Shown here: positions 2,475-34,153 of the stretch, piece after piece
Position numbering within the stretch: position 1 is the stretch's first letter
How the letters are laid out: each line of letters opens with the position of its first letter
Source of the DNA: Pelomyxa schiedti
Taxonomy: Eukaryota > Protista > Evosea
Assembly: GCA_020536535.1 (NCBI GenBank)
Contig: JAHLWZ010000855.1
Location: 7,785-71,784, forward strand
Length of the DNA stretch: 64,000 nucleotides
Direction: 5' to 3'
Made by a program: the position numbers and the translations under genes
The notes under the pieces: model-generated
The model's input: the letters and a program-made list of their open reading frames with translations, nothing else
What the model was told of the DNA's origin: nothing
Databases searched by the model: none

Positions 2475-3834
2475 ATGGCCACCGGTGTCCCCAAAGTCAC
2501 GGTCAGTGATTTGTTTTCATGGGTTGAGGAGGACTACGCACCAAGGTTTTATTTTTGGTGTCAAGAAAGTGCTTGTTTGATTTGCACAAAAACCCCACCC
2601 TATGAACAGCAATTTCGTTTTTTTTTTAATTTGAAATTCGTTAGGTTCATTTCACCAACGCCTACATCACGGCCACCAACGATTTTTCTGCCTGGTGGTG
2701 AAAAACGATTCCTCACATTTGAAGGCATTTCAAATCCTAGCTTATGGAATTTGGTGGAAGAACTAAGTCCTCTGCTGTACGACCCATTGACAATAAAGGA
2801 ACCTGGGATATATGCTTGGATTCTATATGTTCCCTGTCAGGGGAGTGTTTGTGGGGGCTGCAAAAACACTTCTTCCACTTCATCATCTACTACTAGCAGT
2901 ACTCTTGATTCAGAGCCGATTGTGAAACAAGAAAACCCTGGACTTACGTTTTCGTTTGCGGCAACTAAGGTTCATAGTGACCTGTGTGTTGGAACAAAGC
3001 ACGCTGCTATCTATAAGCGCCTTATGGACAAAGGGTGTGCTCAGCCTGAATTGTCACCTGTCATTGTTGCCGGTGAGCTGTTGGTGGAATCTAGTGGCGT
3101 GAGAAAGTACAACTTTTCCTCAGGAACATTTATGCTTGGCAGGTATTCTATCAAATAAGTCTCAGCTATCAATACCTGTCACCAAAACCCTTGTTCCACA
3201 CTTTTGTGTCTTTTCTGTTCAGTGGGAAATAGGTATGACGACAATGAACCCAGTATTGAGAACGACTATCTAGCTCCTTGGGCTAGTACCACAGTTTTCA
3301 CTGGTGATTGGACGTTTGAGCCTGGGTACAGTGAGTGGATGTCAGACTTGCTTCCGAAAATGTCACTCATTGAGCTTATGTGGCTCTCGGATAACGGTGT
3401 GGAGCTCCGGTTATATGAAGATTTTGATGTTGCCACACTTACTTCACTTTATGACCGCCGCCCCGCCCTCAAGTATTTCCCGCTTACGGGAGCTTTCAAT
3501 CAACGGAGTTAATCATTCCCTTAGGACACTTCATGAATCCGCCATCGTCGCACTCGAGCTTGCAATTGCAGCCAACAAAGACTTGGAATCCCGGATTCTC
3601 GCAGTTCAATCCGCTGCTTCATCACAACATCACCACCACCATCATCAGCACCATCACCAACACCAAGCTACACACGGGGCACATCTGGTCGACACCAACC
3701 AGTTGGAAGCGGAACTCCGTGAAACACAGCAATTACTACAATTGCAGCAACTACAACTGCTACACCACACACCACCCTATGCCACTTTTAGCAGAAGCAC
3801 CCCCAACTATGTACAAACACAACTTCTTGGATAA
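2475..3834 (+). CDS. Hypothetical protein with a GIYAWI...GTKH...AGEL...YNFSSGTFM domain and a His/Gln-rich coiled-coil tail
   Basis: ORFs 2418-3158, 3204-3512 and 3304-3834 join by GT-AG introns (GGC AG|gtattc..aaatag|G TAT; CTC AA|gtattt..ccttag|G ACA). The start is placed at aagATGgcc. Confidence 0.7.
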
Positions 3835-4129
3835 AACCACGTCACACATCCAATATTGGACGCTTCAAAAAACGGCCTAATGAAGGAAAAATAAAAACAA
3901 CCAACGTTTATCCACTGGGCATTTCGTTTGATTTTGATGATGGTTTTGGTTTTTTGTTTGTCTGGCTGGTTTTGAATGAGGAACAAACACTTGGAAATTC
4001 ATTCAACCTCTCACCAAGCACTCAAAAAACAAAAATTTTTTGTTGTATGAAACTGCTGGTACTCAGGCCTTACATACATACTAGTTTGAAACAACAGAAT
4101 TCGACAAGGAAAAAAAACCACAAAATTTT

Positions 4130-7100
4130 TTCTTAAGGAACTATCAAAAACACAATACTGAAACACAGAAAATAATGTGACACGTTTATGGGAACACCTC
4201 AAGGTAGAGTTGATCTTGTGGAATTTTAGGAAGTTGTGACGGGAAAAGCCCAGACCTTCAATATAAACTGTAACACAGGTCACGGTGGTGTAGAAATAAA
4301 ATGCCTCACTTGCCGAAGCTGAGTTCTCTAAGGGAGAGTTGGTCGTGGAGACAAAGAAACAACGCGAGACCAGATAGTCGCTCGATATAACCAAGATGAC
4401 TATGCCAACTGGGAACGTTTGCGTACAAAACTACATGGCTTTTGACACAAAGTAAGATTTGACAATAGAGTGTAAAAGAAGATTGCATACACAAAGAGTG
4501 GGAACAAGTCATCGGCTCCGGCGACTGCACCAACTTTCTGTAGCACAGTAACCAAAACCTACAAGAGTGAGAAGAGATTAAAAAAAAAAAAGCAGTTGTA
4601 CCTTACTGCAATTCAAGATACAAAGTAGTTTTTCTTGTGGAGTTTTCGCATTTTCTATTTCTAGTAGCTCTTTAGTTGCACTCTGGTCGACATTAAAATT
4701 GAAGAAAAACAAAAAGGAAAAGACCTGTATAAGGTCAGTGTCTAGTCCATCTCGCATCTCAATGTGTTTGGAAGTTACAGCGGGTTGCAATTTTGATATT
4801 TTAGCTGCAAAAGCGGCATCTTTCTCTTTTAGCTCTTTTTTATTAAAGAGATGTGTATATAGCTGTTCCATGACATAGCGTTTCACCTGTTTTTGTTACC
4901 CTTTTTTTTTAAAAAAAAGGACAATAACCTGTTCTGTTAAAGGTTTTCGTTCCTAAAGGAGAATGAAAGAAAAAGGAAGTCAAGATAAAACTCAGGAACA
5001 AGTCAGGAGGTTACCGCCAGAGTCTTTCGTTTGGGATGAGAATCCACCTGATTCATAATATCGTTTACAAGTTGATAGACAGCATCCCCTTCTTCTTTAA
5101 CGGGATATTTTGCCTTTATAAATCCCTGGAGCATTTTTCCTATTGTATCCCTGTTTGAGGCTTAAGATAAGGAAGAAAAGTTGGAGAATTACTGCAGTTT
5201 ATGAAAATCAGGTAGGGACAGTGTTTCTTCGAATCGCTCTATAACTGGCGGGCAAAATGTGACGTCTTCAGTTGAGGATGAAGTAGCAGCACTCAGTGCT
5301 TTGATAATTTCGAGAGTTGGCTTTGACTTGCCATAACCACCAGAAGTCATATTTTTCAGGGTCTGGGCTACAGTGGAGGAGGAAGCAAAAAGTTTCTGGA
5401 AGCAATAAGTAGAGTTGCACAATTTTTTTTTAAATGAACAAACTCACTGGGTGAGCATATCTTCTTGGAAGGAGCCCTTTTTCCCATTTATCCAACAGTT
5501 GGGCGAATTCTACAGATGTTGATGCCACGTCATAGAACGTACTGTTTGCGGGCCCCAACTTTGGATCTGCACCGTAACTGAGGAATAGTTATCACAGTCA
5601 AGCCGGGAATAAGAAGTAGACCTGAGAAGAAGTTCCAAAATTGGCAGGCAACCAGGAAATGATACAGCAAGGAAAAGTGGAGATAATTGAGATGCATTAT
5701 TATCTAGTATTGGAGCTGTAAATTTAAAGAGCAAATAAAAATACACACTAGGATCTGCCCCAGCTTCCAGTAAAAGTTTCACTGCTTCTGTGTTGGCTTG
5801 TTCTGTTACTGCCAGAAGAAGAGGGGTCTGGCCTGATCCTGACTATCAACATGGGACAAGGTGAGTTGCAGATTTCATGAAGAGTTACACACATGGAGGT
5901 TTGGATCACATGAAGCAAGTAAAGCCGCTAAAACCTGATAAACCACAAATAAATATATTTCTTCTGTACTCTTCCTCCCTTTCATTACCCACAGTCCCGT
6001 ACCGAAAGTTTTTCAGGCGTGTTGCAAGATTTTCGGAGTAATAGGTGAATTGCAGCATTCTTTCGACTATTGAAGAGATTTGTTTTGCACCCCTTAGCAA
6101 GAAGTGTATTAGCAATTCGGTAATTTTGAGCGTCCAAGCTAGAAGATGTTAACACGGGATAGAGGAACATTTCTACAACCAGGACATGAGAGGGGTCCAC
6201 CCGCGATCATCCTGGATTTGGGATCGTCAGGAAAGACTGAAAATGGTGTTTCCATGCCTGTGCATCAAGATTTGGGTTCTTTTCCAATATCATGTTCACT
6301 AGCTCCATGTGGCCAGAATAGCAGGCCGCATGGAGAATTGTCTGCCCTCTGATGGTTGCGGCATTTACAGACAGTGACTGCAGTATTTAGACCAAAGTAC
6401 TAAAGTGGAGGTAACCAACCGCTATGCAGTCCTCTATTTTTTTAACAAGACCAGGGGTGACTCTCCCTGCAGTGAGAATGTGGTTTATGCAATCTACTAA
6501 GACCGGATTGTCAGTTGGTAGAGTATAGGCAATCCAATTGATGGCCATTCCTTGGTACTCCTCGAATTTATCTGGCGGAAGTGTAACAACAAACTCTACA
6601 GAGAGGAAGTCAGTACTGATAACATCTAATAATACAAACCAGCATTGCTAGGAATTATCAGTGAGGCAGGTAGTCTCACAATGTTCAAGGACTGTTGTAC
6701 TGTTATCCATGCACTCACACGAGGGATGGTGCTGAAATGGTAACCAAATTCAACATGTATCTCTGGTGCATTAACTTTATTGCGTCCGCTTTTAAACATT
6801 GATGCAGTGACCGGAAGATGCTGAAAAATTGTATCCGTAAAAGTGAGGAAAGCCTCTCCTAGTGTATTTGCATTTTGTGGTGGTATGTTTTGAGACGGTG
6901 TACTTTGAGAGACAGGTGGTGTTGATGATAGTGTGGTTTGAGATGGTGTACTTTGAGTGTTTGCACTAAGTGGAGCTGAGGCAAGTGTGGTTTGAGATGA
7001 TGTACTTGGAGAAACTGGAACGTTGGAACGTTGCCAGGATGAAGATGAAGAGTGTGTAAGGGGTGGAGTAATTGCACGAGTGGGATTCAGTTGGGGTAAA

Positions 7101-29900: not shown

Positions 29901-31374
29901 GACAACTGAAATTCTCAGTGTTCTTGTCCCGGGGCTATTGTGAGTGGGAGACTTGCATTGTTGTACTCTACCTGTAGAGCACTTATGGAGCCACATTCAC
30001 TCGCGCTGGGCTGTCTTGGCTGGTCACTCTCCGCCCCAAGCCCACTGGGGTGGTCGGCCAGTGGGAACCCAGGGTTGCGGGATTGGAGCCGAAGGTCCAC
30101 TCGGTTCCCTTCCTGCACCCTGGTGCTTCCCGGTTGCCGACTCGTCTGGGTGGGCATTGGGCCCCAAGATGGGCCGGGCACCACTACACCATCGTAGTTC
30201 TTACATTTGCTTTCTGTATGTTGAGATATTCTGTGCGGAGTGAGGGCAACTAGCTTACAGGTGGAGGACAAGTGAGGAGTATGGTCTTGTGGCAAGGTCT
30301 TTTGATGCTGGTTCTTTGACTTATGGAGAGTAGAAGTGTCTAGAAGAGCAAGTTGTTGCAAACTACTGGAGAGATATTTAAGAGTGGAAGGAAATGGTAA
30401 GGGAACGCACATTGGGCAAGAGTTTTGATGTAATTAGTAGTTTGAAGCTGTATCTCTTGCAAAAGTTCTAGGAGAGAACTCCCCTGTCATATGATATGGG
30501 TTGGAATTTGCAGTTGCTTTGTATAAAGGGGTGCACCTTTTCGTAAGTACGGAGGCAGTTTTTGAACTGTCAAGTTGTTCATTGTACACCCGAATAAACC
30601 ACAGATGCTTCTTGGTGTATTGCTTTGCACGAGACTCTGTGGACTTCCAAAGGATTTTGGATTCGTACGCTTTACGGAGGTTAGAATAAAAAACCTCACC
30701 ACATAATCATGCCGCCGCAACTTTCAATACCAACACTTTATCTTACGACTGTGGGCCTTGGTATAACAATAAAAGTATTGAGGGAGTCAGAATAACCTTC
30801 AAATCAAAATAAGAAGGAAAATTAATGGCATAGGTAATTTCCTGTGCATTATGTTTTTATTGTGAAGTTCGAGGAGACCACTTGCTATATCGGTATGGTT
30901 TATTGATAAAGACCTAGTAAATTCGACTGTCGCACCAAGTTGTTCCACGAAAATCTAGCCTCGTTCTCACATACCGACCTCTTTTCTTTATGTAGGTTTC
31001 TATCTCATCATTGTTGCAGCACTCAAGAACAAGATATAAAGTGTTGCACTCAGGTGACTAATCATACAGTGAGTAGTAGATGCTAAGTGGCGGCATGTCT
31101 GTATGGCGGCATAAATATGGTTTCGTGCTAGTGTAACAACGTCTCTGTGATGCACAGACATGACGACTTGAACTTCTACAGTCCACAACTTGTGTTACAG
31201 AAGGTGAACTGAGCAGTATGTGCAATTTATGTGAGCAAATGTGGTGCCAGGGCACTACTGTCAAAACCTGTCACTTTTTTCCCACTTCGTGGCGGCAAGC
31301 CAATTTATGTATTGCCACTCCAACAGCAACCTCGGTTCTCAGAAAGAAGGAAAAACAAAAGAAAATTTGTTTGT

Positions 31375-32861
31375 TCAGGGCTTTTGGCGGAAATACATAT
31401 TGAGGCCTACTTGCACAACAATGAGTGCCACGAGGCACAATAACGCAATGGGTACAAGCTGCGTGACACGACCGGAACGCGGGATGTTTCTGGTGGGTGT
31501 TGGAGTTGTTGTGTTTGCAATTGCGGGCAGTGATGAAGCTGCTGGAGCTTGGTGTGCTTCAAGGTGAGAGGGAACTGTTGAGCAAAGGTTAGTTGGTGAA
31601 TTTGTACAGAAGGAGAGAGTACCGGACAGCTGAGTAGTGGAAGGTAGTAAGGAAACAGTGGCCGGGAGAGTTTTGAGGGGATTGTCTGAAACTGAATTTT
31701 GTTTTGTTGTTTATTGCTTGGTTAATTAAGTGTGGACTGAAGTGCAGCAATACTGTTTAATCTAGTAAGAGTAGTTAGCTTAAAAATCGATTCTGGCACA
31801 GTCGTTAACTGGTTCCCACTCACTGATATAAATTAATAGCGTGGTTGAGATGAGGAAATTTGTACGCCAAAGTTTTTGGAGCTTGGGAAGTTTTCCAAGC
31901 TCTTCCGTGACATGGTTGAGCTTGTTTTTTTTGACTTGGCAAAATTAAACACTCAGACCTAAAAAGGATTACACACCACCAAGTTCTTTAAGACTTGTTA
32001 GACAACCAAAGCCACCCGGTAATGTTGTTAGTTGGTTTGCAGACACTATTTCGTATTGAAAAGAGGAAGTTTGTTTGTTATTATACATACTGAACAGGAG
32101 CTCCAAGTTTGTCAACTTGTAAAAGGAGGTTGGGAGTGCTTTTAAACAGTTGTGGCCAACTGAAAATTGATCAAAGGGATAGGGAAAAATAGGAGGATCA
32201 CAAACGATACAAGGCTTTTAAAGCAGTAAGATTTCCGAAGTTGGCTGGAAGAGACACAATCTTGTTGCGGTGCACTGCAGGACCATTAGGTTACTTACTG
32301 GAAAACGGGAAATGCCACCAGTTAGAACAGAAAGTTGGGTCAGAGAACAGAGGGCGTCTGGAAGACAACTCAAATCATTGAGAAGAACTAAGAACTGGGT
32401 CAAGAATTGAGTGCAATTGATTCACTCTCACGTTGTAAGTGAGTCAAATTTGTAAGTCTGCCAATACCCTCAGGGATAGAGGTCAACTTGTTTCTCCCCA
32501 CTTTTTTGTGTGTTTGTCAGATTAGGAGAAGTTGTTGTGTTGAGAGTGTATCCCCGACATTGCAAATTTGTCAATTTCTCAAGGTTCCACACATCTTTTG
32601 GAACTTCGTGCAAGTCATTTTTGCTCACTGAACGAGGATGAGTCGTCAATTGAACGATACAAAGCACGCGAAAAGGCGAAGCGAAAACCGTGACACACAG
32701 CTAAGAGCTGTTATTGATCGAGAACGTAGTGCCGCGGCACCCCCAGCGCTCAATAACTTCCCGTCACTAAGATCCACCAACATATCCGGGTACCACTTCG
32801 GCTTGGGGGAAAAAAAAGTGTGATCAGATAGAACAAGTGGTTGTACTTTTTCGTGAAGCAT
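31375..32861 (-). CDS. Tail-anchored leucine-rich repeat protein; nine 69-nt one-repeat exons
   Basis: Exons 32559-32627, 32432-32500, 32319-32387, 32206-32274, 32091-32159, 31977-32045, 31866-31934, 31754-31822, 31623-31691, each 69 nt, encode N.L..LP....L..L..L.L repeats. Last exon 31375-31574 ends LVPIALLCLVALIVVQVGLNMYFRQKP*. Start at 32783 or 32861. Confidence 0.92.
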
Positions 32862-32894: not shown

Positions 32895-34153
32895 ATGTCG
32901 AACAGTGGGGAAGCCGCGCCGTTGTTGGCCAACGAGGAGCCACCCACAAGTGCGTCCTCGGGGATAGGCGGATCGTACGACATCAATTACAGCGGCGGCG
33001 CGACTCCCCTGACTCGCCGCAAGTCGTCGGCCCGAGACGCAACTGCAACCGCGACCAGCACCGCGGCGGCCCCCGACGTGTACGACGGCGACGACTCGAC
33101 CCGCGCCGCGTCCGCCTCGGCAGCAGCGACGTCGTACTCGAGCGGCGGCGCCGAGGACGACGTCGTGGCGGGGGGCTACAGCAGCGGCTCCCCGCGGGTA
33201 TCGGGCCGCGACGCCTACGGCGAGGAGGAGGAGGCCGGCGGGAGAGGGGCCCCGCCGTCGTCGTCGGCTGCGGCGTCCCTCGCGTACGCGGCGACGTCGA
33301 GCGGGAGGCTCAGGATGGTCGGCGAGATGGTGTTCACGTCGCTGGTGTTCGCCGTCTGCGGCGCGATTCTGATCGCTTGCTGCGCCTATTCTTTCGCGCA
33401 GAGCACCATTTGGTACTGGTACAAATTGGACACAGGAGAGGGTTTGTTTGATTTCAACTACCTCGATTTTTGGCTTTTTTGTGTTGTTGTTGCTGTTGCT
33501 GGTGTCATTTTCGGGGATGTTTGTTTCTTTTTTTTTTTTTTTTCTTTTTGTTGTGTTGGGTACTGTGGAATTCACACCATAAAAGCCAATGTATATGAGA
33601 CATATGACAGCGTCCAGCAGTGGCAACCTTTGGCTGATTTGTATTTCCAAACCAGGTGCCTTATGGCTTCTGGCGTTGCAATCGAAGTGTTTGTGTGCGT
33701 CGGAGTCATTTTAACCCAGTGCCTCAGAAGATTTAGATGGCTATAGTATGGTTCTCTCCTTCCATTATACTAATTCCCATATCCGTACTGCCAATTTCTT
33801 TATTCCCAACGTTATTCCTTAAAGTTTTGTGTGGATGTTCTGCAGTTTTGCTGGTGTTGCACTACTTATTGCTGCTGCTTATGTATTCCTTGCCTATCAC
33901 CCTTCAGCAATGACAGATGCTGGAATATGTGTTGCCAAAGCGTCTAGTGCTTGTACTTCGTTTTACGGGGATTTAATTGGATCCGGTGATACTGCCAACG
34001 AAGCAAGTTGGCATCCCAGTGTGTTGCCGCTATTTTCATGTTTGAGGGTTAACAGAATGCATAGAAACTGGTTGGATGATGACAACACTTGCTTGGCCTG
34101 TAGCTTTAATTGTTCTGATCGAAACGATATGGGCTCGGGCTTCCCCCCATTGA
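32895..34153 (+). CDS. Multi-pass (about 4 TM) membrane protein, claudin/amastin-like topology, with Ser/Ala/Gly-rich N-terminus
   Basis: Hydrophobic segments FTSLVFAVCGAILIACCAYSFAQSTIWY, SGVAIEVFVCVGVIL, FAGVALLIAAAYVFL, and W.P.TGWMMTTLAWPVALIVLI*. Confidence 0.7.

Follow-up and report, generated by a model that had tools for sequence, protein, structure and literature searches.

One-repeat-per-exon leucine-rich repeat (LRR) genes have been described in brown algae, where the LRR domains of ROCO and LRR-only genes are encoded by 72-nt, phase-2 exons that show shuffling and alternative transcripts (PMC3341825, PMC11378527). These exons have been proposed as the basis of receptor variety (PMC3341825, PMC11378527). 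Gonadotropin receptors are likewise cited in PMC11378527 as having one-LRR-per-exon arrays. The LRR exons of human NLR and ribonuclease-inhibitor genes show strict exonic modularity with a unit of 171 nt, and skipping of exon 5 has been demonstrated for NLRP3 (PMC6642158). Among membrane-bound LRR proteins, LRRC59 is tail-anchored, has about 300 residues, and carries an N-terminal LRR domain that faces the cytosol (PMC6359192). A search of the literature for the one-LRR-per-exon design in Archamoebae returned no paper. The anaerobic archamoeba Pelomyxa schiedti is full of prokaryotic endosymbionts (PMC10579272). Its published assembly comprises 52.4 Mb in 5337 scaffolds; genes contain 7.43 introns on average, and 98.4% of introns are GT-AG (PMC8887013).

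The gene described here is encoded on the minus strand at positions 31375-32861 of a 64,000-nucleotide stretch of the P. schiedti genome (contig JAHLWZ010000855.1, hereafter the window). The GC content of the window is 0.61 at positions 62001-64000 and about 0.45 elsewhere. A regular-expression scan identified nine AG|T+68 nt|GT units on the minus strand, each exactly 69 nt in length. These units, LRR exons 1 to 9, are located at 32559-32627, 32432-32500, 32319-32387, 32206-32274 (as modelled from the pattern), 32091-32159, 31977-32045, 31866-31934, 31754-31822, and 31623-31691. They are separated by introns of 58, 44, 44, 46, 45, 42, 43, and 62 nt, all GT..AG, the last of which (intron 8) spans 31692-31753. 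A 48-nt intron precedes the last exon (31375-31574). Every LRR exon begins with the last two bases of a split codon and, after 22 complete codons, ends with the first base of another; the introns are therefore in phase 1, and they fall at the second Leu of LxL within LxxLxLxxNxL. The exons start with TG, TT, or TC (TG in exon 1, TC in exon 7, and TT in the last exon), and all ten split codons are NTN, encoding L, L, L, V, L, M, V, L, I, and V. Direct reading thus upheld the first-pass annotation of this DNA, which had claimed GT-AG introns of 42-62 nt at one fixed repeat position, T as the first base of every exon including the last, and NTN at every split codon. That such a codon is never a stop is the automatic outcome of a phase-1 intron inside a hydrophobic codon. 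The same annotation had described the exons as freely interchangeable, and formally they can be joined in any order; because the nine are symmetric phase 1-1 cassettes of equal length, any subset of them remains in frame.

The 5' part of the gene is a sequence model. A first coding exon, which would end with one base (T) of a split codon, is predicted at 32699-32861, followed by a putative 71-nt GT..AG intron (intron 0, 32628-32698). Both features lie outside the RNA contigs described below. Two in-frame ATGs are candidate start codons, one at 32861-32859 and one at 32783-32781, and joining the exons by the 69-nt rule gives protein models of 327 aa and 301 aa, respectively. We infer the start codon, the first exon, and the membrane topology of the product from this model. 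A divergent, GC-rich open frame is present on the plus strand at 32895-33590, 33-111 nt from the candidate ATGs. Its translation is Ser/Ala-rich and then contains hydrophobic segments, and a long T-run follows at 33520-33549. With the divergent gene beginning at 32895, a further upstream exon of the LRR gene would have little space.

The architecture resembles that of the brown-algal 'type I LRR exon' genes of Ectocarpus and Saccharina in that each exon encodes one LRR and the exons have identical length and symmetric phase. Tandem exon arrays and many genes per genome are further features in common with brown-algal ROCO genes (PMC3341825, PMC11378527). In the algae, however, 72-nt exons are flanked by phase-2 introns that separate one repeat from the next, after NxLx, whereas in Pelomyxa the exons measure 69 nt and phase-1 introns interrupt LxL. 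In human NLR genes the exon border also lies at a fixed place in the beta-strand and skipping also preserves the frame, but each exon encodes two ribonuclease-inhibitor-type repeats (28 + 29 residues). As exon length, phase, and intron position differ from those of algae and animals, the Pelomyxa design is independent in origin.

The LRR gene is real and transcribed. The RNA evidence consists of four short assembled contigs from three single-cell RNA-seq runs (X1, X2, and X3) of one sample. Splicing matches the prediction exactly at eight of the nine introns located 3' of the LRR exons, with joints at 32559/32500, 32432/32387, 32319/32274, 32091/32045, 31977/31934, 31866/31822, 31754/31691, and 31623/31574. 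The 3' joint of exon 1 and both joints of exon 2 are contained in X3, the joints of exons 3 and 5 in X1 and X3, those of exon 6 in all three runs, those of exons 7 and 8 in X1 and X2, and those of exon 9, including its joint with the last exon, in X2. The X3 contig stops within exon 1, at 32605, 178 nt downstream of the modelled ATG at 32783, and therefore exon 0, intron 0, and the start codon have no RNA support. The contig carries extra loose letters at its end, which resemble the reverse complement of a Smart-seq template-switching oligo. If they are read in this way, 32605 would be the 5' end of a cDNA inside LRR exon 1.

The remaining intron, intron 4, departs from the prediction. Both contigs that cross intron 4 (X1 and X3) align unambiguously with a joint at 32202/32159, and the modelled donor, GTTTGT at 32205, is unused in the RNA contigs. 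The donor used is GTGATC at 32201, 4 nt beyond the modelled site, and an extra GTTT (32202-32205) is retained after exon 4. The first-pass description of nine 69-nt exons consequently stands for all nine in the DNA, but exon 4 is 73 nt in the RNA contigs. This length shifts the frame so that translation would end at codon 164, within exon 6, and no compensating change was found in the RNA contigs between 31429 and 32605. Intron 8 is removed in X2, and one X1 contig retains its 62 nt with introns 7 and 9 spliced, which gives a stop at codon 223. The same contig differs from the assembly at 31444 and 31624; as codon reading shows both differences to be synonymous, it probably represents a second allele. 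No fully productive message is present among the four contigs, and the message is thus partly unproductive in the RNA at hand, owing to the donor shift at exon 4 and one retained intron.

These splicing patterns raise the question of whether the locus is failing or already non-functional, its weak donor GTTTGT having been lost to a cryptic donor 4 nt downstream. Most messages would then yield a protein of 163 aa that has four LRRs but lacks an anchor, and the tail-anchored form would be made little or never. Such decay would account for the use of the +4 donor in two separate runs, and the intron-retaining contig and the decayed kinase copy that adjoins the gene (see below) are compatible with it. 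The exon 4 donor is also unusual in its family: donors of the related 69-nt LRR exons follow GTATGT, and T at +3, which GTTTGT has, occurs in just 7 of 114. A position-weight score built from the same family donors nevertheless does not favour the +4 site (5.2 vs 3.1 bits). Moreover, the open frame and the LRR consensus are both preserved across the 11 modelled exons, and the two allelic differences seen in RNA leave the protein unchanged. Assembled contigs also hide minor isoforms, so that a productive form may coexist with those recovered, for example under regulated unproductive splicing. We therefore regard loss of function as unlikely, although it is the alternative to which we give the most weight. 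A second GT at +4 (GTNNGT) is carried by 31 of the 114 family donors, and for this reason a 4-nt donor slip could endanger LRR-exon genes in general or give the family a means of regulation.

A decayed protein kinase copy with at least two frameshifts is located directly downstream of the LRR gene, on the minus strand at 30164-31348. The remnant has weak yet collinear Pkinase matches, with 72-86% protein identity to copies elsewhere and 80-85% DNA identity to copies on contigs C714, C498, C590, C2677, and C3407. In the window copy the segments YIKKRG, CENEARF, and FVEQLGATVEF are distributed over three frames, whereas C714 has a single open frame, and a 168-nt Gly-loop segment found in C498 is absent. 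The copy on C714 looks intact, with its own Met and Gly-loop and the motifs DFGFAR and GSPLYMAPE, which look ULK/Atg1-like. From their sequences, the kinase copies appear to constitute a dispersed family made up mostly of pseudogenes. The possibility that the remnant is the decayed second half of the LRR gene was considered and rejected, as the homology begins at 31348, past the LRR stop codon, and no LRR exons were found in the fetched stretches around the five other copies, which extend about 1-1.4 kb upstream in the case of C714, C498, and C590. A tblastn comparison of paralog tails with the region past the stop codon of the LRR gene returned noise only. The kinase remnant is a separate pseudogene adjacent to the LRR gene.

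In an alignment of the nine 22-residue exon peptides, N3, L15, and L21 are invariant and the consensus is xxNxLxxLPxxxxxLTxLxxLx; each exon encodes one 23-residue LRR of the SHOC2/RSU1 type. Pfam was queried exon by exon, and these 22-aa peptides matched LRR_4 and LRR_8 at E 0.017-0.06, under the cut-off. With the LRR exon profile, the best matches among solved structures were Leptospira LIC11098, SHOC2 (E 1e-42), RSU1 (E 1e-28), LRRD1, and LRRC8. The repeats share with SHOC2 and RSU1 the register LxxLxLxxNxLxxLPxxIxxLxx. Those two proteins, unlike the modelled product, are soluble scaffolds with no membrane anchor, and the relationship extends to repeat type only. The 23-residue class of LRR to which they belong is typical of cytosolic scaffolds.

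The modelled protein begins with a short, non-hydrophobic N-terminus, which is followed by nine LRRs, a Pro/Thr/Ala-rich linker, a transmembrane (TM) helix, and a short RQKP tail. The linker and everything that follows it are encoded by the last exon, which ends with TGA (31377-31375) and has no Pfam match. The predicted TM helix, LVPIALLCLVALIVVQVGLNMYF, is encoded at 31390-31458 (residues 275-297 of the 301-aa model) and has a 19-residue Kyte-Doolittle mean of 2.81. The C-terminal helix and short basic tail reported by the first-pass annotation were therefore found as described. Its claim that a signal peptide is absent also agrees with the model: both N-termini offered by the inferred exon 0 are non-hydrophobic, with a highest 12-residue hydropathy of 1.06 and no stretch resembling a signal peptide. 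Because the TM helix lies four residues from the end and the model has no signal peptide, the best-supported reading is that the gene encodes a tail-anchored protein whose protein-binding LRR arc would face the cytosol. In layout and size the product would resemble LRRC59, to which we liken it from the published description. In that description, a charged coiled-coil precedes the TM helix of LRRC59 and the lumenal tail is longer, whereas the window gene has a Pro/Thr/Ala-rich linker and a tail of four residues.

Surface proteins commonly place a Ser/Thr/Pro stalk, a TM helix, and a short basic tail after an LRR domain, and the order of domains in the model matches this arrangement. The product could accordingly be pictured as a type I surface protein that displays its LRRs outside the cell on a Pro/Thr-rich stalk and whose signal-peptide exon was missed; exon 0 is a prediction, and the end of the X3 contig with its template-switch-like letters would be in keeping with such an omission. 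Most of what was found argues otherwise. The candidate N-termini are non-hydrophobic, the short interval before the divergent gene constrains any further exon, and the modelled protein has no Cys-rich LRR caps. The repeats are closest to those of cytosolic SHOC2 and RSU1. Paralogs in the same genome carry the same exon type fused directly to kinases, and the relative with a similar C-terminus starts with MEDHSSKNNN, which is not a signal peptide. Taken together, these observations leave the surface orientation as the least probable of the readings weighed here.

To place the gene in its genomic context, the assembly was searched for further exons of this type. A profile of the nine peptides matched 96 genomic positions, many of which form arrays with a spacing of about 115 nt. 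A strict pattern was also used, consisting of AG, T, the LRR core codons, and GT with 69 nt between the splice sites, and the reversed pattern served as a control. This genome-wide search for AG-T(68 nt)-GT exons, which the first-pass annotation had proposed, revealed a family: 77 matches at about 18 loci, compared with 0 in the reversed control. The nine-exon array is thus far beyond chance, and paralogs with the one-LRR-per-exon design do exist. The other loci with strict-pattern matches are on C41, C59, C165, C241, C253 (two), C306, C424, C518, C605, C790, C798, C835, C871, C950, C1225, and C1519. Without the splice sites, the core pattern gave 223 matches vs 32 in its control, and from these counts about 40% of real core-pattern LRRs are estimated to be 69-nt exons, with contiguous repeats in other LRR genes. 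The 19 loci that were fetched contain 126 such exons in arrays of 4-15, 115 of which are T-initial, and the introns of this set range from 39 to 74 nt with a median of 45 nt.

Compared with the window gene, the other P. schiedti genes of this kind (C798, C165, C605, C835, C41, and others) have the same exon length, phase, and first base, but 4-15 repeats and other tails. The tails of the C41 and C165 genes contain kinase pieces. Downstream of their arrays, the C59 and C605 genes have in common a domain of some 220 aa, with 32% identity across 228 aa (E 1e-23), at 4467-5405 and 5272-6312 of the respective fetched stretches. This common domain has no Pfam match, and its KIDxG...F motif hints at an atypical kinase. 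The gene closest in build is on C798 (C798:94500-103500). It has about 15 consecutive 69-nt LRR exons (array at 3638-5322 of that stretch), and its last exon (5430-6548) follows with a Pro/Ser/Thr-rich region some 330 aa long and, at the very C-terminus, a TM helix. Like the window gene, it thus combines a linker and a C-terminal TM helix with an N-terminus that is not a signal peptide. When the regions downstream of the other arrays were scanned for C-terminal TM helices, only the C798 match was convincing. Because this gene repeats the LRR-linker-TM build, at least two tail-anchored LRR proteins are predicted in the genome. The possibility that the paralogs are ROCO genes was rejected, as the largest open frames downstream of ten arrays have no Roc, COR, or kinase match. 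These frames matched just NDK, Na_Ca_ex, and Laminin_G_3, and they probably belong to neighbouring genes. The window gene itself has no ROC-COR of the kind found in brown-algal ROCO genes and ends in a linker, a TM helix, and a stop. No paralog of its last exon was found in the genome, and by the genome profile and pattern searches it is single-copy. One LRR cassette type joined to several tails may be regarded as evolutionary domain shuffling of a kind.

The family also suggests a bolder reading, in which P. schiedti would have independently evolved a family of cytosolic LRR sensors from 69-nt cassettes combined with varied effectors (kinases, anchors, and unknown domains). Such a family could be tuned by low-level skipping or by the 4-nt donor switch, with its tail-anchored member patrolling an organelle or a symbiont-facing membrane. 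We consider this scenario as a whole to be quite unlikely, and a symbiont-facing location of the protein is pure speculation.

The interchangeability of the exons led the first-pass annotation to propose a recognition receptor whose diversity would come from skipped exons or from recombination among paralogs. We therefore examined the age and relationships of the exons. Within the window gene their mean nucleotide identity is 43% and the maximum is 55%. Identity at third codon positions is 0.275 within the gene, compared with 0.28 between exons of different genes, and because this equals the level of unrelated genes, synonymous sites are saturated. When each exon was compared with 117 exons from other loci, its best match reached 49-61% nucleotide identity, and the best matches were scattered over loci and positions. 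Across the family, exons of one gene are more alike than exons of different genes by 2.8 points (permutation p<0.0005), and no adjacency effect was found in the family, neighbouring exons being no more alike than distant ones. TRF identified no DNA-level tandem repeat at the LRR gene, and its introns were found to contain no non-coding LRR relics or DNA repeats. The only near-identical exons in the family are those of C1225 and C1519, which carry the same four LRR exons in the same order with 96-100% identity and would represent either allelic contigs or a very recent duplication. Given the saturation and the lack of a close exon match, there is no sign of recent duplication or exchange. Closely related exons, as expected from recent shuffling, were found neither in the gene (0.55 at most) nor at other loci (0.49-0.61). 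By these measures the LRR exons of the window gene appear to be an old array and not the product of dynamic shuffling.

The RNA contigs point in the same direction, as no skipped-exon joint occurs in any of the four contigs from the three runs. This is weak evidence, because assembled contigs drop rare forms; low-level skipping may be compatible with four contigs from one sample, in which minor isoforms are lost. Both proposed routes to diversity, skipping and recombination between paralogs, thus failed to find support. Brown-algal exons, in contrast, have been shuffled recently, occur as non-coding LRR relics, and are combined in alternative transcripts, whereas the Pelomyxa exons are saturated and appear in no alternative combination in the RNA contigs; for human NLR exons, too, skipping has been shown. 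In favour of a programmed or evolutionary diversifier, with a cytosol-facing receptor whose LRR exons are skipped or swapped with paralogs, are the symmetric exons of equal length, any subset of which is in frame, and the presence of the same cassette at about 18 loci. Precedents exist in brown-algal ROCO genes, where such a role is proposed, and in human NLRP3 exon 5, where skipping is demonstrated (PMC3341825, PMC11378527, PMC6642158), and P. schiedti carries endosymbionts (PMC10579272). Set against the missing skip joints, the saturated synonymous sites, the lack of a close relative either in the gene or among the exons of other loci, the introns free of relics and repeats, and the single copy of the gene, these points leave a diversifying role very unlikely.

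We conclude that this is probably an ordinary, lineage-specific P. schiedti LRR gene that was built by ancient tandem exon duplication and whose modularity is a relic. The points that speak against this conclusion are the small number of RNA contigs, none of them fully productive, the slight excess of exon similarity within genes, and the attachment of one cassette type to several tails. In this explanation the solenoid would have grown long ago by tandem duplication of a unit composed of an exon plus a short intron, and duplication of this unit would account for the presence of one 23-residue repeat in each 69-nt, phase-1 exon. The 69-nt design would then have been inherited across the approximately 18 loci with different C-terminal parts. 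The 301-aa (or 327-aa) product is predicted to be inserted post-translationally as a tail anchor, with its LRR arc toward the cytosol. The exon modularity would accordingly reflect how the domain grew and would not be a working device for diversification.

The window gene alone reveals no new mechanism of diversification. It also illustrates that the use of symmetric exons in different combinations cannot be deduced from their being formally interchangeable, as the sole departures from the predicted splicing in RNA are a frame-breaking donor shift and a retained intron. For annotation, the family is of practical value, since LRR-exon genes escape ORF-based tracks. The kind of architecture is already known, and the P. 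schiedti genes add an amoebozoan example to the known one-repeat-per-exon LRR domains, one of separate origin whose exon length, phase, and intron position differ from those of brown algae and animals. With several kinds of tail on the same LRR cassette in a single genome, the family would be useful for the study of how repeat domains grow.
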